Below are positions 1 to 15,593 of a stretch of DNA of 64,000 bases, piece after piece. The translations under genes and the position numbers were made by a program. The notes under the pieces were generated by a model. It was not told the origin of the DNA. It ran no database searches and was given only the letters and a program-made list of their open reading frames with translations. Numbering within the stretch: the first letter of the stretch is position 1; each line of letters starts with the position of its first letter. The stretch comes from Diplonema japonicum (lineage: Eukaryota; Protista; Euglenozoa: Diplonemea). Where the stretch lies: NCBI GenBank assembly GCA_964019335.1, contig OZ025717.1:1-64000 (forward strand), in the 5' to 3' direction.

Positions 1-265
1 CGGGTTTGCGGGTTTGCGGGTTTGCGGGTTTGCGGGTTTGCGGGTTTGTGCGGGTTTGTGCGGGTTTGCGGGTTTGCGGGTTTGCGGGTTTGCGGGTTTG
101 CGGGTTTGCGGGTTTGCGGGTTTGCGGGTTTGCGGGTTTGCGGGTTTGCGGGTTTGCGGGTTTGCGGGTTTGCGGGTTTGCGGGTTTGCGGGTTTGCGGG
201 TTTGCGGGTTTGCGGGTTTGCGGGTTTGCGGGTTTGCGGGTTTGCGGGTTTGCGGGTTTGCGGGT
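1..265 (+). repeat. Telomere-like tandem octamer (TTTGCGGG)n, ~33 units, two 10-nt variants (CGGGTTTGTG) at 41-60
   Basis: Directly visible near-perfect tandem repeat running off the window start; G/T-rich on the + strand; ends abruptly at ...cgggt|ccaacac. Confidence 0.95.
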
Positions 266-1178
266 CCAACACCCCTGCCTTCCCGTATCCAGGGATCGCA
301 CGGTCTATTATGTCCCACTCCCCGATGTCCTCACCCGGGGCCTCGGAGGGTTGCTTACCTGCCTTTTGTAGAGCTACCGATCGGGACTCATCAAGGAGCA
401 TCATCATCGACTCCTCCTCTCCGACTGCATACTCGTAGTGGTTGCCGTTGTACGCCAGCACCACCACCTTCTCGTGGTCGGAGTTGTACTCCCCTATCAT
501 CAGGACTGGGTTGTTCCCCCCAGCAACCACGAGTATCGTGCGGCCAAACGCTTGTGCTGCGGCTGCCAGGCACAAGTGGTCTCCCCACGTCGCTGCTGTG
601 CCCATCCCTTCCAAGTACCGGCCCCAACCCTCACTGCAAAACGGGGCATAGTGCTCCTCCCGGTGTTTCATCCATTCTACAACCTCGCTCCTGATGTGGG
701 TGTGGTCGCCGTAGGCTTCCCCGAGCGAACCGGCCAGGGCGTGGAACATGCAGTTCCCGTCCTTCTCCGTCGATCCCCTCGTCAGCTTGAAGCTCTTCAT
801 GATCTCGTCCACTGACTTGCCGGCCCTGGGTTGTTTGTCGGGGTTCACAGATTCCGCTGCCTGTGTAGTGCACAGTGCGTCTGGTTCGACGAGCACGCAG
901 CACACGTTCCACAGAGGTTCACCTTCATGCTCCTCGCCTGCTCTTGTTTCACAAAATGATGGTGGACCGCATTGAGGTGTTTAACTAGACAGCTTGCCAC
1001 ACTGGTGCGGAAAGAGCAGTCTTCCATCCGGCATTGATGTTTGTCTGATCCTTCTTTTTCCCCCTCCTTCTGCGCCTCCATGTGCTCATCATCCAAATCC
1101 ATGGGGGGAGGGTCACCACCTCCTTGCAACGCGTCCCCTGCCAGCGTCAAGTCCGCAAAGGGGTCCAGGTGTTCGGCC

Positions 1179-1183
<5 letters not shown>
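266..1183 (-). mobile_element. Retroelement segment C: C2H2/CxxC zinc fingers plus OTU-like cysteine protease, frameshifted, cut off by the octamer repeat
   Basis: ORF 845-1321 has CRMEDCSFRTSVASCLVKHLNAVH and CGTCAACSSNQTHC. A third minus frame, open into the repeat and absent from the ORF track, reads ...EKDGNCMFHALAGSL...IRSEVVEWM...YLEGMGTAATWGDHLCLAAAAQAFGRTILVV...LAYNGNHYEY (OTU Cys and His motifs at ~732-761 and ~429-443). A 1-nt frame change is needed near 860-880. Assignment to the retroelement family is inferred from context. Confidence 0.7.
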
Positions 1184-1228
<45 letters not shown>

Positions 1229-1241
1229 TTTTTTTTTTTTT

Positions 1242-1303
<62 letters not shown>

Positions 1304-1315
1304 TAGTTTTTTTTT
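1184..1315 (-). repeat. ~130-nt poly(A) tract on the element sense strand, candidate poly(A) tail of segment B
   Basis: Near-pure T run on + strand, preceded on the sense strand by a 6-bp stem-loop (1318-1334). Homopolymer runs are common in this genome, so the tail interpretation is tentative. Confidence 0.55.
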
Positions 1316-2900
1316 CCGCACCCAAAAGGGGTGCCAAAATGGGGCTGGACGGACGCAGATGCCTACAGGGGGTTTTTGTAAGTTTGAAAACCGAAAATTC
1401 CGGATGCAAATTTGGCTCCGCGGTGTTCTTGGTGTTCAGGCTCCCTGTCTGCCAGGGCTGGCCCACCATGGCTGTTTTCACCGCCTTCCTTGGGGCCATA
1501 GGTCTTTTGTTATTTCCCTAAACTCCTTCTCCTTGGCTTTTTTTTTTCTTGGCGTCCGCCGTAAAATTGGTGATATTTTGATAAACAAGAGAGGTATGTA
1601 TGGGGGAAAAAGTGCATGCTCAGTGTTGGGGGGGGTCCGGAATAGTGGTTTTATCCGCCTCTTTTCACCCATGGGACGGAAAAGCCCCCGCCTTGCCGAT
1701 CGCGATGGAAGACACGGTTTATGGTTCCCATGCCCCCCACCGGATCGTCTTCTACTCCTCTTTTCACTTTTTTTATTTTTTTACTAGTAAATTAAAACTT
1801 CTCTAACAAGGCGGGAGAAAAAAAAAATCTGGCATGCACAAAAAAGTGGTGATAAAGATTCGAGTTCGTGAATCACTTATCGATAGAGGAGAAAAAGGCC
1901 TCTTTCTTCTCTTTAATTTTTCTCTTTTTCAAACCTCCTTTGATGATAAAATAAAAATTTAAAATTTGGTTGCCGTTCTCTTTCCTTGTTTTTCCTTTTA
2001 TTTTCTCGGCGAACCTGATGCAAAATATAATAAACTAGGGAGGAATGAATCTTTTCTTTTCTTTTCTTTTTTTTTTTCGAGGGGGGGTAGGGTTGGGAGA
2101 AAGAAAATAAAGAAAAGAAAAATAAAAAAAAAGTCGCAGACGGCAGAAAAAATTTTTGAGAAAATAAATAAAAAGGGGGACTTGAGAAAATAAATAAAAA
2201 GGGGGACTTGAGAATGTTTTTTTTTTTTTTTTTTCTTCAAAAGACACACAAGGCACGATAAATCTTAAGAGAAAATAAAAATATTCCAAAACAGACAATC
2301 AAGTTCCAACCTGGGAGGAAGGCATGGGTTTCTCTTTTTCTTTATGGGAGGGAGAGGGGAAGAAGAAGAAGCAACTCCAAATGATAAAAATTCAAAAATA
2401 AAAATCTCAAAAAAGGCTTAAAAGAAGAAGAGGCAAATTCAAAAACATACTAGGGAGGAATGAGTGGGGCAGGGGGTAAAATTTAGGAGGGGGAAAGAGG
2501 GAGAATCAAAAAAGGGGAAAGGGGCAGAGTGACCAATGTCCATGCGAAAAAGCATAGAGCGGGGGAAGAAGAAAATCAAAAACAGGAAAAACACATCACC
2601 ACAAAAGAAAAAAGAAAAAAAAAAAAAAAACGTCGACCGAGATGGTTCCACTTCAAAAAGAAAAAGAAAAAGAAAAACAGAAAAATAAAAAAAAAAAAAA
2701 AAAAAAAAGGAAAAACAAAAAGAAAAAAAAAAAAAAGGAAAAAAAAAAAAAATCTAAGTGGTTCTATCTAGCCTGGCCGTTGTAGCACCTGTTCCTATTC
2801 TTTTATTTTTCCCTTTTTTTTTTCTCAGAAAAAAAAAAAAAAAGTTTCACATCTTCCTATGGCGGGGGGGGGGAGAACAGCCCCCCACACCCCCGCTGGC

Positions 2901-5900
2901 CTATCTGGCCAGCGAGCCTTTGGACCTCTTCTTGTGGGGTATGGGCCCCACCCGTGCCCTCCCCGACTCGAGCTGCAGCCAAGCCACCGCACTGTTCACC
3001 GGGGCCCAGTTCTCCTTGTTGCGCACCTTGACCATGTCCCGCACCAGGTCGTCGCTCCCCAGCTCTTCCATCAACCTGTGCTCCGCCAAGAACTTGAACT
3101 GGGGCCCGGTCATCCCCTTGAGCTCACCCCTGCATATGTTGGCTTCGACCACGGTGCCATCCGCCCCCGTACCCTTCAGATAGATGTAGCCACCCTCCAC
3201 ACAATCCGAGTCAGTACTGGCCGATCGGGCCCGGGCCCGCTTCTTGTCCTTCTTGCTCCACTTCAGCTCTTCCAGGGTGGGGAGGTCCGTGGCAACCACC
3301 TCAGGCCGCCTCTCCCTGTCTTCCTCCTTCTTCCGGGCCAACAGCCCAAGGTACCTCTCAAAGGAGACGTCCTCGAACAACCCCGGGACCGTCACCACCG
3401 CTGACTGCAGGTCGACCTCTTCAACACCCATCTTCCGCAGATGGTCCTGGACAGTGCGCCTCGTCTCCTTCTCGCAGGGCCCCCTCCCCTCGTAGACGTC
3501 GAGGGTGACCTTCCTTCCATCCCTCACCCACGCCTTCACTTTGATCAGGTCCTTGACCTTTCCCACTGGGGCCCTTATCCTTGCGTCGCACCTCTCCAAG
3601 AACTCACGTAGTGTCACCTTGGTAGCGCCGGCTCCCGCCGCAATGTCCACTACCCCTTCCTTCCCCGGTGTCGGGTGGTGTCTGCACCCCCGGGTCTGCA
3701 ACTTGACCACCCTCCATGCCGTTTCCAGAGTCCCCTTGAGCACGCCACCCTTGAAACGAACAGGTTGCACCGCCGAACACCCACATGCGTACGTGATCTG
3801 GAAATCCTGGACCGTCCTCGGGAACTCGAACTCGCGGTATGTTTCCGACTTCTGCACCTCACAACCCACAATGCGGCTGCGGCGCTCTCCGTCCGACCCA
3901 CCCTCCAAGCTTGCGAAGTACTGCTTTACCATCATGTATCCAAGTCCAGCAATACCAATCTGGCCAGCCATAGCCACCTCCAGCGGAACACCCAGCGACT
4001 CGGCCTTCGCAAGAAGCATCTCCTCAGTCCTCTCCCTTCCAGGGTCCGTTCCTTCTTCAAGGATGATCTCCACCCGGCCCTCGAACTGGATGATGAACTT
4101 GAGCAGTCGGTCCCCCGGCCTCGCCCTCAGTGGCACCATCGCTCTCGGAATTGGGATGCCCATCACCACATCAATCGGGTCAAGCTGAACGAAGTCTCCC
4201 CCTACTTCCACCTGCTGTTCCCTTTCCGGTGCCCCGACTCCCATCAGCTGATCTCCCTCCGGCGTCTGGATCCCACCCCTAGGTGTGTCAGGCCCCGACT
4301 GGCTGCCTCCGCTCGGTGCGTTCCCGCCCTCTTTGGTCCCTTCGGGGGCGTCATCCGCCTGCGGTTTCAGAGTCCTCCCACCGCCCTGTCTCTTCGCAGC
4401 TTGTTCCCTACAGAATTCGCTCACGGTCATCTTCCTCGTAGCAGTTGTCGCACTCTGGTCCCCCTTGTTCGAGTCCCTCTGGGCCTCCGTATCCCCCTTA
4501 GGACACTGGTCCAAGGTCTGGTTCACCGCAGCGTCAGTCGCCCCTTGTCTCTTCCCATCTTCCTGGGCCTTCGGGTCAAGCTCCCCTCCCTGCCCAGCCC
4601 TCTCGCTGGATCCTGTTCCGACCATCTCCGTGTCTTCTCCTCCCGGCGAGGCTGCTTCGAGTCCTGCTCCCGCTTTCCCTTGTGTTCCACCCTCCACCGG
4701 TTCCGCCTTTCGCTGCTGCTGCATTCGGGCGTCCAGGTCCTTCTTCGTCTGCTCCAGAAGGGCATCCAGCTGGTGGGCCACCGTGATTGGGGGTCCGCCT
4801 CCCTGTCCCTTCACTTCCCTCTCGGACGACTCCTCAGCTTCGGTGGTTTTTTCATTGCCGAAGGAGTCCTCTGTGAGGTCAGTGTTGGATTCAGTGTTGG
4901 GTTCGTTGTTCGCTTCCTCGTTGTCCTTTTTTTCCTCTTCGCCGTCCGGTACCGGGGGCCCTGGATCCAACTGTACAGGCCCTTTGACTAACAGCGCCCC
5001 TGCTATCGATCTCATCATGGCCGTTGACACCTCTTGGACCACACGCCTGTGTATCGAGACTCTGTCCCCGTGAGCCCGCGCAGCTATGCTCCTGGACAGT
5101 TTCTTCGTGAGGTAGACTGCTGCCTCCCCGAACCCCCCAAAGGTCTCCATCGCGAAAGGTACAAAGGCCACGCGTGTCTTGGCGAGCTCCGCCTCATACT
5201 TCTGGCGCTTGTAGTGTTCCGCCTTCGCCGCTGCGTATCCCGCAGTCTTCGCCGCCTGGTTGACACAAGACTCGTTCCTCGGGTGCACGATGACCACGTC
5301 CATAGCCATTGGGCGGGAACCCCCCACCCCACCTGGGAAGAACACGTCCGCCGGGCGCTGGGACGACCCCGGGATCAGCCCCGTCTTCTCCATCGTTGCG
5401 CTCACCCCGGCCCACTGACAGTGTCTGTGGATGGTCTCCTTCACCCGGTCGTGCCTCGCAATCCTGGCGTTGCCGCATCCCTGGGCATGGTCACCCCATA
5501 CGTCCATCCCCTCAGTCTTGCACCTCGGGTCGTGGCAGCTCTCACCCTGCTTGTAGACCGGAGCCCCCAACCACCACTCCGTCTCAGCTCGTTCCTTCGC
5601 CGCTTGCTTGGCGTCCTCCTTCTTTTTTCTGCGTCTTGAGCTTCTAGGCGGGCCCAAGTACACCGGCCGGTAGTGACCTCTCGATCCGCGTCTTGTCTTC
5701 TTCAGCTTTACCGGTCCGAATCTCTGGGTCGGGCCAGCACCAGCTTTCCCCACCATCACTTCCACCATGGCCCAGAGCGACATCAGCCCCCCTATCCAAA
5801 CTGAAGTGCTTCCCACCAGAGTGCCCCCTACCGCTAGCCAAGCGAGCTCCCCGGCGGACCATTCATCCCCTCGGGGCCCCACCTGTACCCTTGACCTGCG

Positions 5901-7409
5901 GGTGGTCCTCCTGTCGCTCCCCGGCCTCTTCCACAACACTGCCGCATGCAGGAAGGAGGGGGCCATCCCGATGCCCGCCCCCAGCACCTGCCTCACCCCT
6001 GGGATCAGCAAGAGGGAGAACAGGGCGACCCAGGCCCACGCCCCCAGGTGCTCCCATCTCACCCCTTCCTTGCTGTGTCCCGTCCGTCTGCGGTGCCTCC
6101 TTGTGCCGGTTGCAGCCCCAGGTGCCGGGATTCTGGGTGCCAGGGGTTGGGCTCCAGGCGTTCCCACCTCGGTCCGCTTCAGCCCCATTGCAGGGTCATC
6201 TGGCTTCTGTTCCAGGGCGGCCTCGTGTTCCTCTCTGCGGGCCCTCCTCCTCCCTTCTTTCCTCGCACGACGGTGCCTTTTCTTCTCCTGTCTGGCAGCC
6301 TCCCTCGCCCCCTCCCTCGCCTTGGTCCTCTTCTCCCGACGCCTCTGAAGGGCCGCTTCGCTCCTGTGCCTCCTCCTGTTCTTCTTCCGCTTGGGCGCTG
6401 GCTTAGGTTCCCTGCCACCCATGGCAATCCAGGGGGCTCTTTTCTGTCTTCTCACAAGGGTGTGCAGTGGTGCTCTCACGTCGCTCGCAGCCTCCGCCCC
6501 AACCACACCTTGGCGGGCGGTGGGGGTGGGTGCTGGGTCCCCCTGGTTGTTTGAAAAGAAAAAAGGTTCCTCCTTGTTTGTTTTTTTTTTTTCTTTCCCT
6601 TCCACCCTCAAAAAAAGCCCCCGGCCCTTGGGGACCAGGGTGTACACCTCCGTAGAGGGTCCAGAAAAAATGGGGGGCAGAGAGGGAGGGGCACTACCTT
6701 CTCTCGGGCGTGCTGTCTCTCCCTCTGCCTTTTTTTCCTCCGAAGAGGGTCTGTTTTTCACCTCCGTGGAGGGTCCCTCTGGAGAGGGCTCTATAAAAGA
6801 AAAAGGGGGGGACAAATGGGGGGGAGGAGCACCACCCTCTCTCGGGAGTGCCACCTCTTCCCCTTTCTCTCTATTTTCCTCCGAAGAGGGTCTGTTTTCC
6901 TCCGAAGAGGGTTCTAAAAAAAAAAGGGGGGCGGGTGGGGCACTATCCTCTCTTGGGAGTGCCACCCCCCCTTGCCCACAAAAAAGGGGATCTAAAAAAG
7001 GGGGTTCGTCTGTTAACCCAGGGGATGGGTCTTCCTGGGGTGTGCGGGTGAGCTTGGGGCCTACCGCACGCAGGGTGATCGACACCCTGACACCAGTGGA
7101 CATCCCGGACGGGATGTGGTGCGTCCACTGGTGTCTCGCTTCACCTTCCAACAATGCCCATGAGAAGGGGGGCACCAGGTATTTCGCCACCCTGTCCCCC
7201 CTCCTCATGACCATTGTGGTCTCGGCTCCGTACGAGAGGACTAGGACAATCGGTCCCAGCCTCGCGTCGTCCTTGTGGGCGGCAATCCCACAACCAGACT
7301 TGTACTTGTTGACAAGTACCTGGTTGGGGACCACCTCGAGCCCTGCGGCGGCGGCCACCTCCCTCACCCACCCCTCCGCCCCCCCTGGGATCCCCGTGGT
7401 GGGGCGCAC
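2901..7409 (-). CDS. Retrotransposon polyprotein: AlkB-type 2OG-Fe(II) dioxygenase (~7065-7335), Pro-rich repeats, Arg-rich and hydrophobic segments, CCHC knuckle plus restriction-like endonuclease (~4990-5580), unknown C-terminal region; no RT core
   Basis: AlkB motifs VNKY, HKD, WTHHI, RVSITLR. RLE motifs CHDPRC..DHAQGC, RHDRVK, RPADV, DVVIVHP, KRQKY, FVPFAMETFGGFG. The leader ATG (7438) is out of frame with this ORF, so it may be a pseudogene. Confidence 0.8.
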   Translation of the reverse strand: MRPTTGIPGGAEGWVREVAAAAGLEVVPNQVLVNKYKSGCGIAAHKDDARLGPIVLVLSYGAETTMVMRRGDRVAKYLVPPFSWALLEGEARHQWTHHIPSGMSTGVRVSITLRAVGPKLTRTPQEDPSPGLTDEPPFLDPLFCGQGGVALPREDSAPPAPLFFLEPSSEENRPSSEENREKGEEVALPREGGAPPPHLSPPFSFIEPSPEGPSTEVKNRPSSEEKKAEGETARPREGSAPPSLPPIFSGPSTEVYTLVPKGRGLFLRVEGKEKKKTNKEEPFFFSNNQGDPAPTPTARQGVVGAEAASDVRAPLHTLVRRQKRAPWIAMGGREPKPAPKRKKNRRRHRSEAALQRRREKRTKAREGAREAARQEKKRHRRARKEGRRRARREEHEAALEQKPDDPAMGLKRTEVGTPGAQPLAPRIPAPGAATGTRRHRRRTGHSKEGVRWEHLGAWAWVALFSLLLIPGVRQVLGAGIGMAPSFLHAAVLWKRPGSDRRTTRRSRVQVGPRGDEWSAGELAWLAVGGTLVGSTSVWIGGLMSLWAMVEVMVGKAGAGPTQRFGPVKLKKTRRGSRGHYRPVYLGPPRSSRRRKKKEDAKQAAKERAETEWWLGAPVYKQGESCHDPRCKTEGMDVWGDHAQGCGNARIARHDRVKETIHRHCQWAGVSATMEKTGLIPGSSQRPADVFFPGGVGGSRPMAMDVVIVHPRNESCVNQAAKTAGYAAAKAEHYKRQKYEAELAKTRVAFVPFAMETFGGFGEAAVYLTKKLSRSIAARAHGDRVSIHRRVVQEVSTAMMRSIAGALLVKGPVQLDPGPPVPDGEEEKKDNEEANNEPNTESNTDLTEDSFGNEKTTEAEESSEREVKGQGGGPPITVAHQLDALLEQTKKDLDARMQQQRKAEPVEGGTQGKAGAGLEAASPGGEDTEMVGTGSSERAGQGGELDPKAQEDGKRQGATDAAVNQTLDQCPKGDTEAQRDSNKGDQSATTATRKMTVSEFCREQAAKRQGGGRTLKPQADDAPEGTKEGGNAPSGGSQSGPDTPRGGIQTPEGDQLMGVGAPEREQQVEVGGDFVQLDPIDVVMGIPIPRAMVPLRARPGDRLLKFIIQFEGRVEIILEEGTDPGRERTEEMLLAKAESLGVPLEVAMAGQIGIAGLGYMMVKQYFASLEGGSDGERRSRIVGCEVQKSETYREFEFPRTVQDFQITYACGCSAVQPVRFKGGVLKGTLETAWRVVKLQTRGCRHHPTPGKEGVVDIAAGAGATKVTLREFLERCDARIRAPVGKVKDLIKVKAWVRDGRKVTLDVYEGRGPCEKETRRTVQDHLRKMGVEEVDLQSAVVTVPGLFEDVSFERYLGLLARKKEEDRERRPEVVATDLPTLEELKWSKKDKKRARARSASTDSDCVEGGYIYLKGTGADGTVVEANICRGELKGMTGPQFKFLAEHRLMEELGSDDLVRDMVKVRNKENWAPVNSAVAWLQLESGRARVGPIPHKKRSKGSLAR
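6660..6975 (-). repeat. Three degenerate ~110-140 bp tandem units encoding (V/T)A(L/R)PRE.(S/G)APP...EPS/GPS
   Basis: Repeats VALPREDSAPP / VALPREGGAPP / TARPREGSAPP and repeated NRPSSEE in the translation. Confidence 0.75.
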
Positions 7410-7462
7410 CTTGGCGTTCGTCCCCTCCCCGGATCCATTTTTTTTTTTTTTTTTGTTTTATA

Positions 7463-7643
7463 GTGTTGGGGGGGAGGGGATCCTTTCGTTGAGCGGCGGG
7501 CAGGCCGACGGGCAAAACAACCCCCCCGGACGACGGCGACGACGGACGACGGACGCAGCGGCAAACCCAGGCAGAGGCGGCAGGCACCAGCAGAACACGA
7601 ACGACCAATAAAGTACAGAAACTGTAGCTTTAGAATCGTTGGT
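7463..7643 (-). repeat. 181-bp direct repeat copy 1 (SL + element 5' leader), identical to 8575-8755
   Basis: Base-for-base match at an offset of 1112 bp; both copies are followed by an A-rich run and ATGGATCC. Confidence 0.95.
7606..7643 (-). other. Spliced-leader exon copy (nt 2-39): ACCAACGATTCTAAAGCTACAGTTTCTGTACTTTATTG
   Basis: 38 nt with the euglenozoan SL core CAGTTTCTGTACT.TATTG and a diplonemid-type 5' end (A)ACCAACGAT; one nt short of the canonical 39. Confidence 0.92.
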
Positions 7644-8755
7644 ACACCCCCTTCCAGCCCATGTTCGTATTTGGGATTCAGCTCCTTGCACTGCTTCATC
7701 GTCGACGCCCTCGAAGCCATGTTGGCCGCGCGCAGGTGCTCCTGGCAGCTCCTCATCCCAAGCCCGCCGACTTTTACGGACAGTTTCGCCTGCTGCCATT
7801 CTTTCGACCCGTTCTCGAACTGCATGCCGCACACCTTCGACATCGTCTTCCGCACCATCTCGTCGAACCTGTGCATGACCCCTCCCACATGCGAGTCTGG
7901 GACCACTCTCATGTAAAACACCAGTTTGCTGTATGAGCAGCAATACCGGAGAAGTGTGTACCCTGTCTGCCTCCCCACCTTGGTCAGCATGTCGAAGTTC
8001 TCTTCCAGCACGTCCAAGCGTTTGTTCAGAAAGGCTTGCGTGTACTCCGGCGATCCTATCGGCGCCCCCAGGAGCATGAAGTTCCTCTCTTTGTGGAAAT
8101 TCTCTTCTGTCAGGCCATCGAAGCCTGTGTCCTCCACTTCAACAATAGCAGGGTCGGCTGCAGGGGTCGTGGTCGCGGCGGTCGTGGCTGCGGCAGGGGC
8201 GGCTGCGGCGATCGGGATGGCAGGGTCGGCTGCCTGGGCAGGGTCGGCTGCGGCGTTCAGGGCGGCCGGGGCTGTCGCAGCCGTCGTGCTTGCGGCTGGG
8301 GTGGCCGTGGCTGTAGCAGGGGCGGCTGCTGCTCCCTTGGTCGTGGTCAAAACCACGGTCTCTACTTGTATTTTTTTTAATGTAATTTTTTCTAAAGGGG
8401 AGTGGGGGGATCTAGGGGGTGGGGATTCATACTGCCCAACCAGATTGCCAGGTTGGGTGGGTCTCGGCGCCGTGTGCTGCGGGCTGCGGGCTTGCTCCTG
8501 CGGGCTGCGGCTGCGGCTGCGGTCACCTCCTCCTGCGAGTCGTCTTGGATCCATTTTTTTTTTGTTTATTGTGTGTGTTGGGGGGGAGGGGATCCTTTCG
8601 TTGAGCGGCGGGCAGGCCGACGGGCAAAACAACCCCCCCGGACGACGGCGACGACGGACGACGGACGCAGCGGCAAACCCAGGCAGAGGCGGCAGGCACC
8701 AGCAGAACACGAACGACCAATAAAGTACAGAAACTGTAGCTTTAGAATCGTTGGT
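7644..8755 (-). mobile_element. Retroelement segment A: SL-headed, internally deleted and 3'-truncated CRE-like element retaining only the end of the RT and the thumb
   Basis: ORF from ATG 8554: MDPRRLAGGG..., Ala/Thr/Pro-rich linker, then NFMLLGAPIGS..YTQAFL..RL...YTLLRYCCSYSKLVFYMR...QAKLSVKVGGLGMR, typical of the CRE-clade RT domain 7/thumb. It stops where the next SL begins. Confidence 0.8.
8718..8755 (-). other. Spliced-leader exon copy (nt 2-39), second copy
   Basis: Identical to 7606-7643 with a different upstream flank (GTTCC| versus GGTGT|). Confidence 0.92.
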
Positions 8756-8912
8756 GGAACTTCGCGATGTACTCCGCTTTCCTCGTCTCCCCGCCCAGCA
8801 CATCCAATACCTTCCTCTCCACAGTAGTGTTGTTGCTGTAGTCCAGGTACCACTGCACAGAGCGGCAGGGCTGCGAAAAAGCGTGGCCGTACAGGATACC
8901 GGTGGCGGGCAT
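8756..8912 (-). pseudogene. Glutathione S-transferase (theta-like) N-terminus truncated after ~52 codons by the SL-headed element
   Basis: Manual translation from ATG 8912: MPATGILYGHAFSQPCRSVQWYLDYSNNTTVERKVLDVLGGETRKAEYIAKF, matching the GST-N pattern LYG..SQPCRSV...GE.R..EY. Not in the ORF track. Confidence 0.78.
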
Positions 8913-9434
8913 TTTGTTTAGTTTTGAGGTGTGTATTATGTTTATCTATGAAATCATTGTTGTTGTTGTTGTTGTTGTTGGTGGTGGTGACTGGGGGGAG
9001 CAGAATACGCAAACAATGGGATGGGGTGGGGGGAGGACAAGCTACGTTTTTAATCACATCACAGGGAAAAAGAAAAAAGAGAAGGAAGATAAAAGACAAT
9101 CCTATAAAAAAGGGGGGACAGCAACCGAAAGGAGAACAGACGAAGAGGCCGAGACGTGAGAGGTTGCTTCTCTTGTCTCGCTGTCGCCGAGGTCTCCACT
9201 GCTGGCAAAAGCAAAATACGAGTTTACACGTGACATTCTTACCGCATAAAAAGAGACAACAACAAAAGCACTCTGTTCCATCACAGGGGAAAGGGGGGGG
9301 GGGGGGGGGGAGAAAGAGAAAGAAACAAAAATACAAAAAAAAAAACCACAACAGACAGCAAAAGAGGAAGACGAAGCGGGCGAGACGTGAGGAGGCTTCT
9401 CTTGTCTTGCCACGTCTCTTCTGGCTGGCTGTTT

Positions 9435-9575: not shown

Positions 9576-10931
9576 TCAAAGACCCGGCCAGTTCCCTGTG
9601 GTAGGATCGCACTTGGTGTAGACGGGAGCGGGACCCCACCTCCAGGTAGGTTTGATGATGTCGTTGAGGTTGGCGGCGAGCTCGGGGGCGAGCTTGGTGC
9701 CGTTGGGGTTGGTGGTGGGGCTCGGGTTCACGGACCACACGAAGGCCCCCAGGAAGCCGTTCTGCTTGGCGTAGGTGGCGATCTCCTTGTCGGCGGCCAT
9801 CCCCTCCCACACGCCGCCCGCCGCCTGCTCGCCGGGCTCGAAGCCGATGTTGATCTTCTCCTTCGGGACCTTCCCGTAGGTCACGAAGTTGTTCATGATG
9901 GTCGTGAAGTTCAGCTGCAGCGCCCCTGCAGGGGTCCCCGCGTCGTAGGCCATGATGTTCGCGGTGTCGAAGCTCGCCCCCGACTGCGGCCAGATCTTCG
10001 CCCCTTCGTTGTCCGTCGCGAAGGTCTGGTTCGGGCGCGGGCTCCCCGGGAGCAGGTAGTTCCAAGGGTTCCCTGCGGGGAGGAAGGCGTTGAAGCGCGT
10101 CGTCCACGACACCTCCAGGTGGTCCGGCCCGTTCTTCCCCACCTCGTCCATGAAGTTCATGTTGGTCTGGTAGTAGGGCTTCATGTCGGCCTGCTGCCAC
10201 GGCTGCAGGGCGTTGTACTCCGCCTCCAGCTGCTGCTTCCTCGTCGCCGCGAAGCTGCTCCACTGCGGCTTCACGTTGCTGTCCAGCTCCTCCCGCAGGG
10301 CCGCCACCAGCGCGTTGTACGCCGCGAACTCGTCGTCCCCGTTGATCGTCGCGAACGGCGTCAGGTGCTCGAAGTCCAGGTCCACCCCGTCCGCGAAGGT
10401 CCACAGCACCAGCTTCCCCATCAGCTTCGCGATCGAGCGCGCGTTCTGAACGCTCCCCACCCGCGCGAAGTCGCTCCACCCGCCGAGCGAGATCTTGAAC
10501 CTCTTCGGCCCGTCGGGGTGCATCTTCGCCATCCGCGACGACTCCGCGATCGACACGATCCCAGGGGTCGCCGCCGACGTCGACGGGGTGATCGCCGCCG
10601 CCCCGTTCTTCGACGCCGCCGCCAGGTAGATCGCCTTCCCGTCCCACACGGGGCACGGCCCTGAGGCCCCGCCAGAAGTCCCGTTCGGAGCGTTGCTGCA
10701 GCTCACCTGCGACGGTGTCGGGTTCTCCGTCAGGAAGGTGAACCCGTAGTTCACGCTCGAGTACGGCTTCAGCGACGTGATGTACGGCTGGGGTTCGAAG
10801 CACCCCATCAGGCAGTTCCCGGGGATGTTGTTGTCCCACCACTTCACGTTCACCCAGTCCTCAAGGTACCCCAGCAGCTCGTTCCCGCTGCACACTCCTG
10901 CAAGCAGCAGCACAAGGAGAAGCGTCTTCAT
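9576..10931 (-). CDS. Secreted glycoside hydrolase family 18 (chitinase-like)
   Basis: Signal peptide MKTLLLVLLLAGVCSG; KISLGGW; catalytic DGVDLDFE (DxDxE); IMAYD; GAFVWS. Start reassigned to ATG 10931. Confidence 0.88.
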   Translation of the reverse strand: MKTLLLVLLLAGVCSGNELLGYLEDWVNVKWWDNNIPGNCLMGCFEPQPYITSLKPYSSVNYGFTFLTENPTPSQVSCSNAPNGTSGGASGPCPVWDGKAIYLAAASKNGAAAITPSTSAATPGIVSIAESSRMAKMHPDGPKRFKISLGGWSDFARVGSVQNARSIAKLMGKLVLWTFADGVDLDFEHLTPFATINGDDEFAAYNALVAALREELDSNVKPQWSSFAATRKQQLEAEYNALQPWQQADMKPYYQTNMNFMDEVGKNGPDHLEVSWTTRFNAFLPAGNPWNYLLPGSPRPNQTFATDNEGAKIWPQSGASFDTANIMAYDAGTPAGALQLNFTTIMNNFVTYGKVPKEKINIGFEPGEQAAGGVWEGMAADKEIATYAKQNGFLGAFVWSVNPSPTTNPNGTKLAPELAANLNDIIKPTWRWGPAPVYTKCDPTTGNWPGL

Positions 10932-10997
10932 TTTGATGGTGTTGTTGTTGTGAGCGCACTGTCGATGCTGTTGTTGTGTTGCGCAGGGAAGGGACGA

Positions 10998-11089
10998 GGG
11001 GTGCTCAAATGAAATAGCTTGAAGAAAGTGTAATGCGACGAAGTGATGTCTTTCTCGTTCATTAAAAAGAAAAAGCAAAAGAAAATCGC
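10998..11089 (-). promoter_or_regulatory. Conserved upstream element shared with 12842-12923
   Basis: Near-identical ~85-bp block (GGGGTGCTCAA.TGAAATAG...AGTGTAATGCGACGAAGTGAT..TTTCTCGTTCATTAAAAAGAAAAA...GAAAATCGC) 70-100 bp upstream of two unrelated secreted-protein genes. Function is inferred. Confidence 0.6.
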
Positions 11090-11719
11090 GCGAATAAGGG
11101 AGAGGAGGGAGGGAGGGATGTAAAAAAAAGAGAGGCAAACAATTAGAGTTTCTGTTCTCTTTCTTTCCTTTTTATTACATTCTTCTTCTTCTTCTTCTTG
11201 TTCGTGCTATTTCTAACCTTTCATTCTTCCCTGGAAGGGGCTCCATCTAGCTCAGAAGATTCAATCTTAATCCCATTTGCACCAGGTGTTGGAAGAAAAT
11301 GAGAAGAGGAAGAAAAACAAAGAAGGCAAAGAAGAAAGGGCTAAAAGGACAGAAGAGGGGGAGGGGGGGGGGGGGGGGGGACTTAAAAGTGCTCCACAGA
11401 AAGGGGTACTTTTAAAAGAAAACGCAAAAAAAACCAAAAGAAAAGAAAAACAAAACCAATCGTGGCGCTCGTGTTAGTTGTGCACAGCAGCACCTTTAAG
11501 GTATGCAGACCATGCTTCCAACGAATAGTTTAGCAGAGTCATAGAAAAAGAGGGAGAGGGAAAGAAAAATGGAGAGAGCGCGAATACCGGCAAAAGGCGG
11601 AACAAGGAGGGCATTTATCGTGTCGAATACCTTTCCTTGTCTCTTAACCACTGCTTTGTTGTTTTTTTTTTCCCTCTCACCCTCGATTCTTTCTTTTTTC
11701 TTTTTTTAAAATTATTGTT

Positions 11720-12745
11720 TCAAAGACACACACACGGCCTGTTCGGCCCTGTGGTGCCTGGTTTCACATTGTTCTTGGCAGGACACCAGTCCTCTCCCAC
11801 ATTTTGGGAGGTGGAGAAGACCGCGACGTGAGGGGCATCTGTGGAGACAGGGATGTCGAGGGTCTCGCCTGCTTGGAGGGTTTTGTGGAAGACGGTCATG
11901 GTCTGGGTCTGCGAGGAGCCTGCGGGGGTGAAGATGGGGGCGCACGAGGAACCCCTCCAGGACTGCGAGAGGAGGAAGCCGGGGATCCCACCGTTCTTCC
12001 CGCGGGAGCAAGGGGGGCAGTGGTACACCGCAACGAAGAAGTTGCAGGCTTCACCCTTCTGAGCACAGCACTCCAGCTTGATCTCGTCACCGGGGGCAAG
12101 AGGAGGCAAGCTGTACACAGCAGCGGCCTCCAGGACCCCGGGAGGGTTCGCGAGCGTCCTCTCCGCGGACACCGCCTTCCTGTCCACGAACGATGAGGGT
12201 GGGTGCCTCGTCTCCGTCCCGCTCTTCACAGTCGTCGCCCCACCGCACGTCGCGCAGCAGTCCGCCCTGCCCCTGATCAGGAAGGGGTTGACCCCCGGGT
12301 TCAGCTCCCTGCAGTTGTTTCTCCCGCACACCAGACCATCCCCGCACTCCGAGTCGTAGTCGCAGTCCCCTTCGCCGTGCTTGCACCCAGGGTTCAGGAA
12401 GCAGTAGTTGCGGTGGAAGGGCTGCATGTTCTCGCAGCAGTCGTATGACCTGCGGTACACGTGATCCATACCAGGGTGCATCTCCCTGCAGTTATTGTAC
12501 CCGCACACCAGGTCCCCCTTGCACTCCCGGTCCCTGTCGCAGTCACCGCCCCCATGCCCACAGGGCCCGTTCTTGCAGTAGTGTCTGTTCCCCGGCGACC
12601 CGAAGGTCAACCCTTGGACCACGGGTTCCGCATCCTCCTCCGTTTCCTCTTCGGTGCGGTCCCATTCATCCCCAGGCTGCTCCCCCTCGATGGCCCCCAT
12701 CGAAGCAACCGACATCGTCACCACCACCAGGGCAAGTGTCTTCAT
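11720..12745 (-). CDS. Secreted cysteine-rich protein with two C.HG.GDCD.D.EC...LVCG.NNC repeats
   Basis: 341-aa ORF, hydrophobic N-terminus, tandem Cys-rich repeats, Cys-containing C-terminal domain. Confidence 0.8.
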   Translation of the reverse strand: MKTLALVVVTMSVASMGAIEGEQPGDEWDRTEEETEEDAEPVVQGLTFGSPGNRHYCKNGPCGHGGGDCDRDRECKGDLVCGYNNCREMHPGMDHVYRRSYDCCENMQPFHRNYCFLNPGCKHGEGDCDYDSECGDGLVCGRNNCRELNPGVNPFLIRGRADCCATCGGATTVKSGTETRHPPSSFVDRKAVSAERTLANPPGVLEAAAVYSLPPLAPGDEIKLECCAQKGEACNFFVAVYHCPPCSRGKNGGIPGFLLSQSWRGSSCAPIFTPAGSSQTQTMTVFHKTLQAGETLDIPVSTDAPHVAVFSTSQNVGEDWCPAKNNVKPGTTGPNRPCVCL

Positions 12746-12841
12746 TATTTCTTCTTTTTTTTTTTTTTTTGTTGTTGTAAGCTGTTTATGTGGTGTGCAC
12801 AGCAGGCGTGATCAAAAGCAGAAGAAGAAAGAAGAAAACCC

Positions 12842-12923
12842 GGGGTGCTCAATGAAATAGAAAAACAGTGTAATGCGACGAAGTGATCTTTCTCGTTCAT
12901 TAAAAAGAAAAAACGAAAATCGC
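12842..12923 (-). promoter_or_regulatory. Conserved upstream element, second copy
   Basis: Matches 10998-11089. Confidence 0.6.
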
Positions 12924-13479
12924 ACGTGAAAGTCTCGATTGTTGACACATCGCTCCAAAAATATGAAGCAGGATAAAATAAATACTGCATACAACAGAGA
13001 AAATCGAATAAGAAATCAGATCGTTGGTTGACTGTAGCAGGCGGCAGCAGGATGTTCTCTGCGACGGAGACATTCGGGCACCTTCAGCCCAATACTCGCT
13101 CAGTTCACGCCTTTCTCACATCTATTCTCCACAAGACCCTAAAAATAAATAGGGAAGGAATCCCACTAGTCCATTCATTCATATGTAAAGACTCGATGAT
13201 TTAAAGGAAGCCGGTGGGGGCACCCTGCACAAGCACCATTTACTTGATTACAGGGGGCGCACCTCGGCCTAGCTGTAGCTTCTTCTGCGTTCCGCGTCGT
13301 GTCCTTAATGCGTGCGGTGTGCAGCTCAACCCCAGCCGGGGCGCCCCGGGTAACCAAGATTCTGAGCCCGTGTAGTTTGCTGCCTGTTCGCCACCCAGAG
13401 CATCTGCTTCTTCCACTTGGGCGCTACCGGTGATGACCGACGGGGAGGTCAACAGCGAACAACACATCTGATGTACTTC

Positions 13480-13577
13480 TTTATATTTCCATGTTATCCC
13501 CACCACCTGAAAAAAAAAAAAAAAAAAAAAACCTTTATCTTCTTTTTCAGGTGGTGGGGATAACATGAAAATATAAA
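13480..13577. repeat. Inverted repeat, 35-bp arms (1 mismatch), 28-nt A-rich spacer
   Basis: TTTATATTTCCATGTTATCCCCACCACCTGAAAAA (13480-13514) pairs with TTTTTCAGGTGGTGGGGATAACATGAAAATATAAA (13543-13577). Confidence 0.9.
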
Positions 13578-13735
13578 AAGTGTAATGTAAAGATGTTCAT
13601 TTCACAATGCTCATATGTCTGTTAACTGAGTGCAGCTGACAAACTCATTTCACACCTGTTGTGAGGTATATTAAATAATAAAAAAGCAAAAACGACAGAA
13701 GAAACGTAACGTAGTTAGGGTACAAACAGTCACAT

Positions 13736-15593
13736 TCATAACACCTTGCTGTGACGGACAGAAAGTGCGGGTGATAACAAAGGCCTTGTTGGTGGGAATT
13801 TTTGAATTTCTGGTGTTTGGAATGGGGATGAAGTTTGCAACCCAGGTGGCGTCAACCAGTAAGGAGTACTCAAGGGATACGTGCGCCTTACTGGGTATGC
13901 TGTATCACTGCGGGTAGGGGTGGCCGTGTCGCTGCTGTAGGCGGTGTCGCTGTGGATGCGAGAGGGTGTCACGCAGGGTCCAGACAACCGTACTGCTTCA
14001 TCTGACGGGTGCGTTGACTTCTTTTTTGATAGGGCGTCGTCCGCCTCATTACGCGGACCACATGGCCCGCCCACAGAGAGAGAAACGTCAAGCGACCGCT
14101 TCCGGGGTGGTGACTCATGCACTGGGTCCTCATGCACAGGTTCCTCATGCACTGGGGGTTCTTTCTCTTCTTCTTCAGCTTGCTCTAGCAAATCGTCGTC
14201 ATCCTTTTCCTCCGTGTCGCCATTGGTATCGTTGTTTTCATTGTCCAACGCCAAGGCGTAGGGGATTTCGATATTCTCGCAGTCAACATGCGTGAAGCTT
14301 TTCTCCTCAGCTGAACGGGTCTGTGGGCTCTTCAGCTCTAAGTTGGATCGTGCTTTTTCTTTATACGATCTTAGTTTTGACCGCACTTTAAGGAACATGA
14401 AGGACAGGTTTGTCCACTTCCTCTCTGTGAATGCGTTAGCTATCTCCTCTGCAGAGACAGTGATGGTGTCGACTGCGCCAAAGCGGTCCCTGTCGATGCC
14501 CTTGCTGCTCTGGAAGAACTCGTGTTGCATGATCTGTTCCAGAGTGAATCGCGTCTCAGGGTTCTTGTCCAACAAACCTTCAAGCAGAGAGATGGTCGGT
14601 TTGTCAGTAAAGGTGTCAGGTATGTGGAAGGGCGACTTGAGAATACGGGAAGTCACTTCTGGGATGGTGGTCGCAAAGAACGGCAGCCGTCCGAAGAGCA
14701 TAGCGTAAAAGGTCACCCCGACTGCCCAAATGTCCACAGCACCAGCGTCTACTGAGGACCTGCCCTCGACTACCTCAGGAGAGAGAAACACTGGTGTTCC
14801 TTCGAAGAACTTCATTTGCGAGGCATCCTCTTCGGTGTCGAAAGAGATCGAGACACCGAAGTCGGACACTTTTACTGTGCCGTCGCCGCCAAGGAGTAAG
14901 TTCTCGGGTTTTATATCCCTGTGGAAGATGAGGTGCTGGTGGAGAAAAGAGATGCCGTTAATGATGTCAAGCATTGCATTGCGAGCCTCACTTATGCTGA
15001 AGACCTTCCCGCCTGTGGTGCCGTCGTCTTCGATCTTAAGGAGGTTTCCCTTCTCCAAGTACTCGAGCACCATGTACATCTTGTCGTCCTCCGCGTCGTT
15101 GATCACTTCGTACAGCTTTACTACATTCTTGTGATTCATTTTCTTCAGCAACGCCAGCTCTCTTGCCACATTATCCATTGCACTCCCACTGCTGGACCGG
15201 GTCTTGTTCAAGATCGTCTTCTTCATCACCTTCATCGCACGCACCTCGTCAGTCTCGTTGTCAACTGCAAGCTTGACTTTTGAGTAAGCCCCCTGTCCCA
15301 GATCGCCTACAATGGAGTATTGGTTGATTGTCTTGTTTCCGTCATCGTCTTCACCTTGGCGCTTTTGAGTGGTCTCTTTCACACTGCGAATGGTTATCAT
15401 GGCTGTGTGCATACCTGCCACCAAGTTCATAAAAGGATCCATTGCTGGAATTGGAGAAGGGTGATACTGATGTCAGAGGGCTGTTCGGTGGCTTCATTTT
15501 CTTTTTAGGTATGCTCGTCTCAGTCGGCGTGATGGCTAGGACGCTCTCTGTCCTGTTGGCATCGATGTCGTCGTAGCCTACGGACGAAGTCAT
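13736..15593 (-). CDS. Ser/Thr protein kinase, CAMKK-like; 31-nt intron 15384-15414
   Basis: GQGAYSKVK, RAMK, HRDIKPEN, DFG, GTPVFLSPE, DIWAVG; INQY and EVIND...KMYMVLEY are CAMKK-like. The intron GTATG..CGCAG joins upstream ORF 15351-15617 in frame. Confidence 0.9.

Follow-up and report, generated by a model that had tools for sequence, protein, structure and literature searches.

The window analysed here, the first 64 kb of contig C70 (492,668 bp) in a 62.5-Mb, 132-contig assembly of Diplonema japonicum, carries the left end of a euglenozoan chromosome, and its terminal approximately 8.8 kb is made up of three defective copies, joined head to tail, of one approximately 10.7-kb retrotransposon without long terminal repeats (non-LTR retrotransposon), followed by an array of an 8-mer repeat. 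Two of these copies begin with the spliced leader (SL) of the host, encoded in the DNA from its second or third nucleotide (nt) onwards, and the same head is carried genome-wide by more than 200 copies from at least six families, at least five of them besides the telomeric family represented here. With a probability of roughly two in three, the heads arose by reverse transcription of trans-spliced element RNA, the copies of the telomeric family having been fixed at or near chromosome ends.

Spliced leader heads in the window and the genome

An initial annotation of the window had reported two element copies opening with the same 38 nt, followed by a 143-nt leader, an A-run and ATGGATCC, and preceded by unrelated flanks, all of which was confirmed. 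The 38-mer occurs exactly at 7606-7643 and 8718-8755, both on the minus strand, with no other match in the window and none in 100 dinucleotide shuffles, and the 181-nt block formed by the 38-mer and the leader is 100% identical between 7463-7643 and 8575-8755 (minus strand). The block is followed by 17 A in copy 1 (7438-7454) and 10 A in copy 2 (8554-8563), and then by ATGGATCC (7431-7438 and 8547-8554, respectively), directly after which the two copies split; they are not separate elements, and the split stems from 527 bp that copy 1, compared with full-length copies, has lost internally. Upstream, copy 2 is flanked by a 52-codon gene fragment (8757-8912) and copy 1 by the reverse transcriptase (RT) thumb region of copy 2. 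The earlier naming of the gene fragment as a GST exon is unproven, the corresponding Pfam match (GST_N_3) covering 23 residues at E = 0.16. Both copies had also been described as stopping at SL nt 2, which holds for copy 2; at the joint of copy 1 the flanking element supplies ...GTGTA, a microhomology of 1 nt, and the SL of copy 1 therefore begins at nt 2 or nt 3. The features of the terminal array are listed below by position in the window.

1-265, plus strand: terminal 8-mer array (CGGGTTTG)n, 32.6 units (TRF), reading (CAAACCCG)n toward the tip on the element sense (minus) strand
263-1183, minus strand: copy 3, a zinc-finger/OTU fragment truncated at both ends (blastn, 98% identity to locus L036, 4061-4984; junction sequences)
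1184-1315, minus strand: copy 1 poly(A) of about 130 A, interrupted three times and seen as a T-run when the plus strand is read
1316-2900, minus strand: 3' untranslated region (UTR) of copy 1, A/G-rich and of low complexity, approximately 1.6 kb
2901-7409, minus strand: long open frame of copy 1, 1502 amino acids (aa), with AlkB, a basic low-complexity region, restriction-like endonuclease (RLE) motifs and a C-terminal part of approximately 740 aa
5133-5537, minus strand: RLE region (CX4CX10HX3C, RHD, E, RPAD, D)
7068-7370, minus strand: AlkB-type 2OG-Fe(II) dioxygenase domain (Pfam PF13532, E = 3.4e-9; HxD, H and Rx5R motifs)
7431-7462, minus strand: end of the leader, A17 and ATGGATCC of copy 1, with the 527-bp deletion directly after GGATCC (joint 7431/7429)
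7463-7605, minus strand: 143-nt leader of copy 1, beginning GTCGTT and distinct from the SL RNA intron
7606-7643, minus strand: DNA-encoded SL nt 2-39 of copy 1, the A at nt 2 being common to the flank
7644-8546, minus strand: body of copy 2, comprising an N-terminal low-complexity coding region and then the RT thumb
8547-8574, minus strand: ATGGATCC, A10 and end of the leader of copy 2
8575-8717, minus strand: 143-nt leader of copy 2, identical to that of copy 1
8718-8755, minus strand: DNA-encoded SL nt 2-39 of copy 2, preceded by C
8757-8912, minus strand: 52-codon gene fragment of a multi-copy family, cut by copy 2 where the chromosome body gives way to the terminal array of elements

The 38-mer corresponds to nt 2-39 of the organism's 39-nt SL, as had been proposed, the exon being the same in the promoter-bearing SL RNA genes; it differs at two positions from the published Diplonema SL (PMC3795323). 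A 24-mer core of the SL is present at 234 genomic sites, six of which combine a conserved upstream block, the full 39-nt exon from AACC, an intron beginning GTACCC, a terminal stem and a T-tract. Two of these six true SL RNA genes adjoin a 5S rRNA gene (Rfam, 102.6 bits) at L050 (C15:777577-780223), with other sites at approximately 512.4 kb on C59, at C4:650074 and at C51:59127. The end of contig C15 falls within the SL/5S repeat and has no terminal array, and a copy of the element abuts the edge of the SL/5S array there; this array is incompletely assembled, and the six promoter-bearing genes are the assembled ones only. Their intron is unrelated to the 143-nt leader of the element, which rules out the leader as an SL RNA intron, and the 181-nt block is not the normal SL RNA gene of the organism, the true genes lying elsewhere with their own intron, upstream block and T-tract. 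An Rfam scan of the whole window returned no family at the gathering score. In two RNA-like public runs, 344 and 701 contigs have the SL at their ends joined to varied sequences, one of which runs into an ATG, indicating that mRNA 5' ends carry this SL and not another, and in a DNA-like public run the commonest sequence after the SL is the true SL RNA intron. The six promoter-bearing SL genes are intact, so that at assembled loci the elements stand outside SL genes, and the SL travels with the element, all 62 exact leader starts in the assembly being preceded by it, both as initially proposed.

Of 41 distinct heads tallied in the genome, 30 open with SL nt 2 and 8 with nt 3, while two further heads have point changes, so the proposed stop near the SL 5' end extends beyond the window. 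The flank has an A mimicking SL nt 1 in 7 of the 30 heads starting at nt 2, about as often as base composition predicts, and SL nt 1 is never demonstrably copied. Conservation was counted over SL nt 3-23, nt 24-39 being left out as the search anchor, and a single change was observed across 30 young copies compared to the approximately 12 expected from the divergence of the leader; in subfamilies with 10-30% leader divergence there was no change at all. The SL is thus either renewed or constrained in element copies.

The SL head had been tied to a CRE-like family but is not confined to such elements, as several families of long interspersed nuclear elements (LINEs) of the apurinic/apyrimidinic endonuclease (APE) type are headed by the SL as well. 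At 10 or more SL-headed loci, APE and RT domains are encoded in one open frame on the strand of the SL, 2-4 kb downstream of it; judged by the positions of these matches, the families are ordinary APE-type LINEs without a link to SL genes. Seven relic copies, from the telomeric family and at least one other and none of them in the window, carry a full SL followed by SL nt 24-39 and the leader, the break always falling directly after the AG inside the SL (...ACAG). These relics have the form expected when an SL-bearing DNA copy is read through and trans-spliced again. In some further copies the SL is joined to a position further inside the leader, once directly after an AG (SL|GATCC). At L044 (C2:150575), SL RNA from nt 2, comprising the exon and almost the whole intron, is fused via AGG to the 5' end of an APE-type LINE, which looks like a template jump of the RT onto SL RNA and is unlike the regular head.

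Several additional observations were made at the heads. The SL is followed by GT in approximately 177 of the 234 copies and in four of the six families, and directly by G in all six, such that SL|GT in element copies mimics the splice donor of SL RNA. Partial, stuttered SLs precede full SLs at L001, L004, L012/L035 and L022, often ending at SL nt 22-23, and at L022 several partial SLs run straight into the terminal array. The chromosome-internal SL-headed LINEs (L043-L064) very often have a T-run directly upstream of the SL, which may represent a target preference or a polypyrimidine tract for renewed trans-splicing. When the 181-nt head is folded, nt 2-10 of the SL pair with nt 1-9 of the leader, and an anti-SL hairpin was considered on this basis but is unsupported, given that its energy is no better than that of shuffled sequences (z = 0.17) and that no compensatory change is present in four subfamily sequences.

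Architecture of the element and its position at chromosome ends

Comparison of the window with the longer copies L033 (right end of C38) and L036 (left end of C42) gives a unit of approximately 10.7 kb, equal to the 10,659-bp period of a tandem array on C24. The unit consists, in order, of SL nt 2-39, the 143-nt leader, an A-run, an ATG, a low-complexity coding region, AlkB, a basic region, a C2H2-like finger, OTU, RT, RLE, approximately 740 aa without a match, a 1.6-kb 3' UTR and poly(A). The RT and OTU domains are recognised in the full-length relative L033 (RVT_1, PF00078, E = 4.6e-17; OTU, PF02338, E = 1.3e-12), the RT being represented in the window by its thumb region in copy 2 and by nothing in copy 1. 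The only solved structures matched by the element protein are of R2 proteins (PDB), and among named relatives the best is a protein of Diplonema papillatum that carries the label 'SLACS 132 kDa', with 44% identity. The RLE, for which Pfam has no model, was called by its motifs, all of which are present in the right order when compared with the SLACS/CRE/MoTeR consensus (PMC12857005), with C-C, C-H, C-RHD and D-D spacers that fall outside the published SLACS/CRE ranges. The poly(A) of approximately 130 nt, the 5'-truncated copies at poly(A) and the RT, OTU and AlkB domains identify the element as a retrotransposon copied from RNA; copy 3 is one of the 5'-truncated pieces joined to poly(A), an 18-nt fragment in L031 being another. 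For the 499 aa that close the open frame in the window there was no Pfam match and no usable Atlas match, leaving the last approximately 500 aa (2904-4400, minus strand) as an unassigned domain after the endonuclease, a part that R2 and CRE elements lack.

All three copies in the window are damaged. The frame of copy 1 is not continuous with the ATG at 7436-7438, and this copy is without the C-terminal part of OTU and the whole RT (joint near 5577/5578), a loss of approximately 4.1 kb; its 3' UTR ends ...GGGTGCGG-A9-CTAC, and in the tandem array on C24 it is this 3' end that adjoins the following SL. Copy 2 has internal deletions at approximately 8137/8138 and at 7852/7855 and is cut on its 3' side where copy 1 begins, and contigs from the public runs depart from the window sequence at 7643 and at 8137/8138. 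Copy 3 carries frameshifts (three-frame translation), its 5' end being joined to the poly(A) of copy 1 and its broken 3' end capped by the terminal repeat. On C24, at least four SL heads (7178, 17837, 28496 and 39079) with an exact spacing of 10,659 bp indicate full-length units in tandem, and at the junctions L038 and L039 the ...GGGTGCGG-A9-CT of one unit abuts the next SL without poly(A). In the otherwise near-intact element at L033 (7943-7982; C38, approximately 579.9 kb), five reversed terminal-repeat units (CGGGTTTG) stand in place of three bases of the RLE coding region, with loss of the reading frame just beyond them.

Location was scored for 40 full-length matches to the 181-nt block, 36 of which lie no more than 14 kb from a contig end, in every case with the sense strand running toward that end and its (CAAACCCG)n array. 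Exceptions are seen at an internal head-to-head repeat junction on C30, in a copy next to the C24 tandem array and 42 kb from that contig's end (the array spanning 7-42 kb from the end), and in two internal copies. An untargeted lifestyle was therefore not supported, the family being concentrated at chromosome ends in one orientation. The terminal arrays read (CGGGTTTG)n at every contig start and (CAAACCCG)n at every contig end, with 5477 four-unit matches genome-wide, and there are no TTAGGG arrays in the assembly. The strand running 5' to 3' to the chromosome tip is accordingly the C-rich CAAACCCG strand, a reversed polarity, and the same repeat is added at broken ends; no match to the 8-mer motif was found in the literature searched. 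The arrays are joined to arbitrary positions within elements, indicating breakage and then healing by new repeats. The 5' neighbours of the 41 heads are 3'-truncated older copies in the same orientation (at least six), stuttered SL pieces (7), terminal repeats (5) and, for the rest, unique or A-rich sequence. At L002, a poly(A) end is followed by 2.5 terminal repeats and then by the next SL. Within the 620-kb contig C30 (L031, 3648-4108; approximately 334.6-335.1 kb), two terminal arrays stand head to head with SL-headed elements pointing in from both sides, which is either an old end-to-end fusion or an assembly join.

Inward of the terminal array, the flank at 8757-9060 has a second, 100% identical copy at C70:72987-73286, 64 kb further into the chromosome, and diverged paralogues on C70 and C35, which suggests a segmental duplication at the chromosome end. 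The first genes inward, in the region 9576-15442 (minus strand), are one for a predicted secreted protein of GH18-like type (PF00704), one for a secreted protein rich in cysteine and an open frame resembling a protein kinase, the last of these recognised by eye from the translation. With every neighbouring gene in the window lying on the minus strand, the terminal transcription unit runs toward the tip.

Origin of the spliced leader heads

The start positions, the conservation of the SL, its spread over families, the relics and the other joints together favour reverse transcription of trans-spliced RNA. Element RNA would, like all mRNAs in this organism, receive the SL by trans-splicing, and the element RT would copy this RNA to the second or third base, failing at the capped and, by analogy with trypanosomatids, probably modified first base. 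The first SL base is modified within the trypanosomatid cap 4, a structure established for trypanosomatids only. The complementary DNA (cDNA) would then be fixed at or near a chromosome end, for which two routes can be envisaged. Target-primed reverse transcription could start from a nick after the T-run of the CGGGTTTG strand, which would pair with poly(A), in which case template jumps between RNAs would build the chains and the proximal repeats would be lost before 5' joining. Alternatively, an eroded chromosome tip could capture the 5'-end side of a full-length cDNA and prime second-strand synthesis. The orientation, with the 5' end proximal and poly(A) distal, excludes priming of the first strand by the natural chromosome 3' end. 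The arrangement at L002 fits the target-primed route, and the joints to truncated elements and to the cut gene fit either. Later breaks inside elements would be healed by new 8-mer repeats, and SL-bearing copies may be re-transcribed by read-through of the tip-directed transcription unit and re-spliced at the AG in the encoded SL, giving rise to the rare relics.

There are several observations that weigh against this origin of the heads. None of the 62 exact leader starts in the assembly is without the SL or has an AG in its place, and a splice acceptor for the exact SL|GTCGTT joint is consequently not seen. Relic forms make up approximately 3% of copies and should dominate if SL-bearing copies were the sources, their rarity implying that SL-bearing copies are not the main sources. 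The element leader has no depth in the RNA-like public runs, which consist of contigs of uncertain kind. Finally, poly(A) leads directly into terminal repeats at only one examined end (L002), the others leading into 5'-truncated copies.

The absence of an acceptor-bearing copy and the invariance of the SL|leader joint in all 62 copies are features that would be expected if transcription started from a master copy, i.e. one or a few full-length elements directly after the SL exon of an SL RNA gene, using the SL promoter, which SLACS also uses in trypanosomes, without trans-splicing. The nearest named relative is annotated as SLACS-like, CRE-clade elements target SL genes, and the SL/5S array, inside which C15 ends with an element copy at its edge, is unassembled. 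However, no master copy, whether in an SL gene or with an AG acceptor as the initial annotation had envisaged, is present in the assembly, and all six assembled promoter-bearing SL exons are followed by the normal intron. Further, APE-type families with no reason to target SL genes have the same head, which makes a master copy less likely as a general explanation, and, as the relics and alternative joints show, element RNA does undergo trans-splicing. A master copy is on balance considered unlikely. The lack of any SL-less copy in the assembly would also be consistent with mimicry, in which the SL is passed on as part of the element and transcription begins at the first SL bases from a promoter inside the leader, providing a translatable SL-like 5' end without splicing. 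Internal promoters are found in many LINEs, such as Pr77 of L1Tc (PMC1874656), and the retention of the SL as the leader diverges could reflect selection. Copying without renewal should nevertheless erode the 5' end stepwise, whereas the starts are sharp at nt 2-3, the base at position 1 is not inherited within subfamilies, and unrelated families share an identical SL, which together leave mimicry improbable.

A similarly low probability, if anything slightly lower, is given to the gain of the SL during reverse transcription by a jump of the RT, at the 5' end of unspliced RNA, to an SL-bearing RNA or to SL RNA itself. A clear template jump of this kind is represented by L044, with its SL RNA intron, and stuttered partial SLs and the order SL, partial leader, SL are seen in 7 of the 41 heads. 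Jumps to SL RNA would, however, bring the intron, which is seen once, jumps to mRNAs would bring their 5' UTRs, and neither would be expected to produce an exact, family-specific SL|leader joint in approximately 100 copies. The simplest alternative, that the 181-nt block is an SL RNA gene, could draw on the GT after the SL and on a possible pairing between nt 2-10 of the SL and nt 1-9 of the leader that resembles stem-loop I of SL RNAs. It is already refuted by the different intron, conserved upstream block and T-tract of the true genes, the block also being without nt 1, preceded by unrelated flanks and followed by an A-run and open frames, with a fold no better than shuffled sequences and no covariation, and its remaining probability is negligible. 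Returning to the reverse transcription of trans-spliced RNA, a speculative extension, considered unlikely, is that the elements are part of chromosome-end maintenance, being added SL side first to eroded or broken tips, and that AlkB would strip base methylations from the SL cap such that the RT can read to nt 2.

Relation to known systems and significance

Retrogenes with DNA-encoded relict SLs are known from dinoflagellates (PMC5585692, PMC6050394, PMC12014239), where, as is proposed for the present case, genomic copies owe the host SL at their start to the reverse transcription of trans-spliced RNA, and where re-splicing at an AG in the encoded SL leaves a truncated relic behind a new SL, as in the seven copies here. 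The copies described here are likewise polyadenylated retrocopies with a DNA-encoded SL at the 5' end. They differ in that the tagged sequences are autonomous non-LTR retrotransposons of several families and not cellular retrogenes, that the host is a euglenozoan with a 39-nt SL, and that relics are infrequent and no stacks of several relics were seen.

With SLACS, CZAR, CRE1 and CRE2 the element shares a euglenozoan host, an RT followed by a C-terminal RLE with CCHC, RHD, E, R/KPD and D/E motifs, and SL sequence at the RNA 5' end, and the features of the R2/CRE group that were examined, namely the RT, the C-terminal RLE and poly(A) with 5' truncation, are present. CRE-clade elements, however, integrate within the SL exon of SL RNA genes and keep no more than the first bases of it, whereas the element here is found at chromosome ends and carries nt 2-39, and there is no insertion in the SL exon at the six assembled promoter-bearing genes, the SL/5S array being incompletely assembled. 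It further differs in its added AlkB, OTU and approximately 740-aa C-terminal parts and in its motif spacers. The likeness to the CRE clade, hinted at by the source label of the best match, derives from annotation and motifs. An AlkB domain has also been reported in Ty3/Gypsy elements of orchids (PMC9289625).

MoTeR of Magnaporthe, FoTeR of Fusarium and Cnl1 of Cryptococcus (PMC7367193, PMC12857005) are likewise RLE-type elements located almost only at chromosome ends in a fixed orientation, with truncated copies common, terminal repeats at junctions and a sense strand collinear with the C-rich repeat strand. The 5' end of the fungal MoTeR and FoTeR elements faces the tip (PMC12857005), in contrast to the 3' end here, and where the element described here has an SL head and a long poly(A), its fungal counterparts bear telomere-like repeats at their ends and lack poly(A). 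Repeats on both sides of each insertion, as in MoTeR and FoTeR, are not seen, most junctions here being without terminal repeats and 5 of the 41 heads having them directly upstream. The Drosophila elements HeT-A, TART and TAHRE also form head-to-tail terminal non-LTR arrays in which one end of a unit is complete and its neighbour is truncated by erosion. The present arrays are the mirror image of these, the complete end being the 5' SL of the distal unit rather than, as in Drosophila, the 3' oligo(A) on the proximal side, and simple terminal repeats have not been replaced here, being still present and added to broken ends. Chimeras such as U6/L1 and those of other LINEs, formed by template switching of the RT (10.1101/2025.02.02.635956), resemble L044 and the stuttered SLs, whereas the regular SL head has an exact joint and is without the SL RNA intron. 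Overall, the element works like a telomere-associated RLE-type LINE with SL-tagging as in dinoflagellate retrogenes.

No report of retrotransposons with the host SL as their genomic 5' end, including in Euglenozoa, was found in the literature searched. What is new here is that entire LINE families of a euglenozoan carry an SL head, together with the mirror-image layout of the terminal arrays and the load of AlkB and OTU. The SL provides a built-in tag of complete 5' ends and, with the relics, a record of repeated expression and copying, a tool that until now existed for dinoflagellate retrogenes alone. Stopping at nt 2-3 reports in vivo on the RT at the SL cap, and this stop and the AlkB domain together suggest a link of retrotransposition to the methylation of cap bases. 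With the telomeric family, an arrangement in which the 5' end is proximal and poly(A) distal joins the few known for telomere-associated retrotransposons, and the family sits in a genome with an unexplained strand polarity of the terminal repeats. If the elements do take part in end maintenance, this would be the mirror image of HeT-A/TART addition, in a genome whose C-rich 8-mer strand ends 3'.

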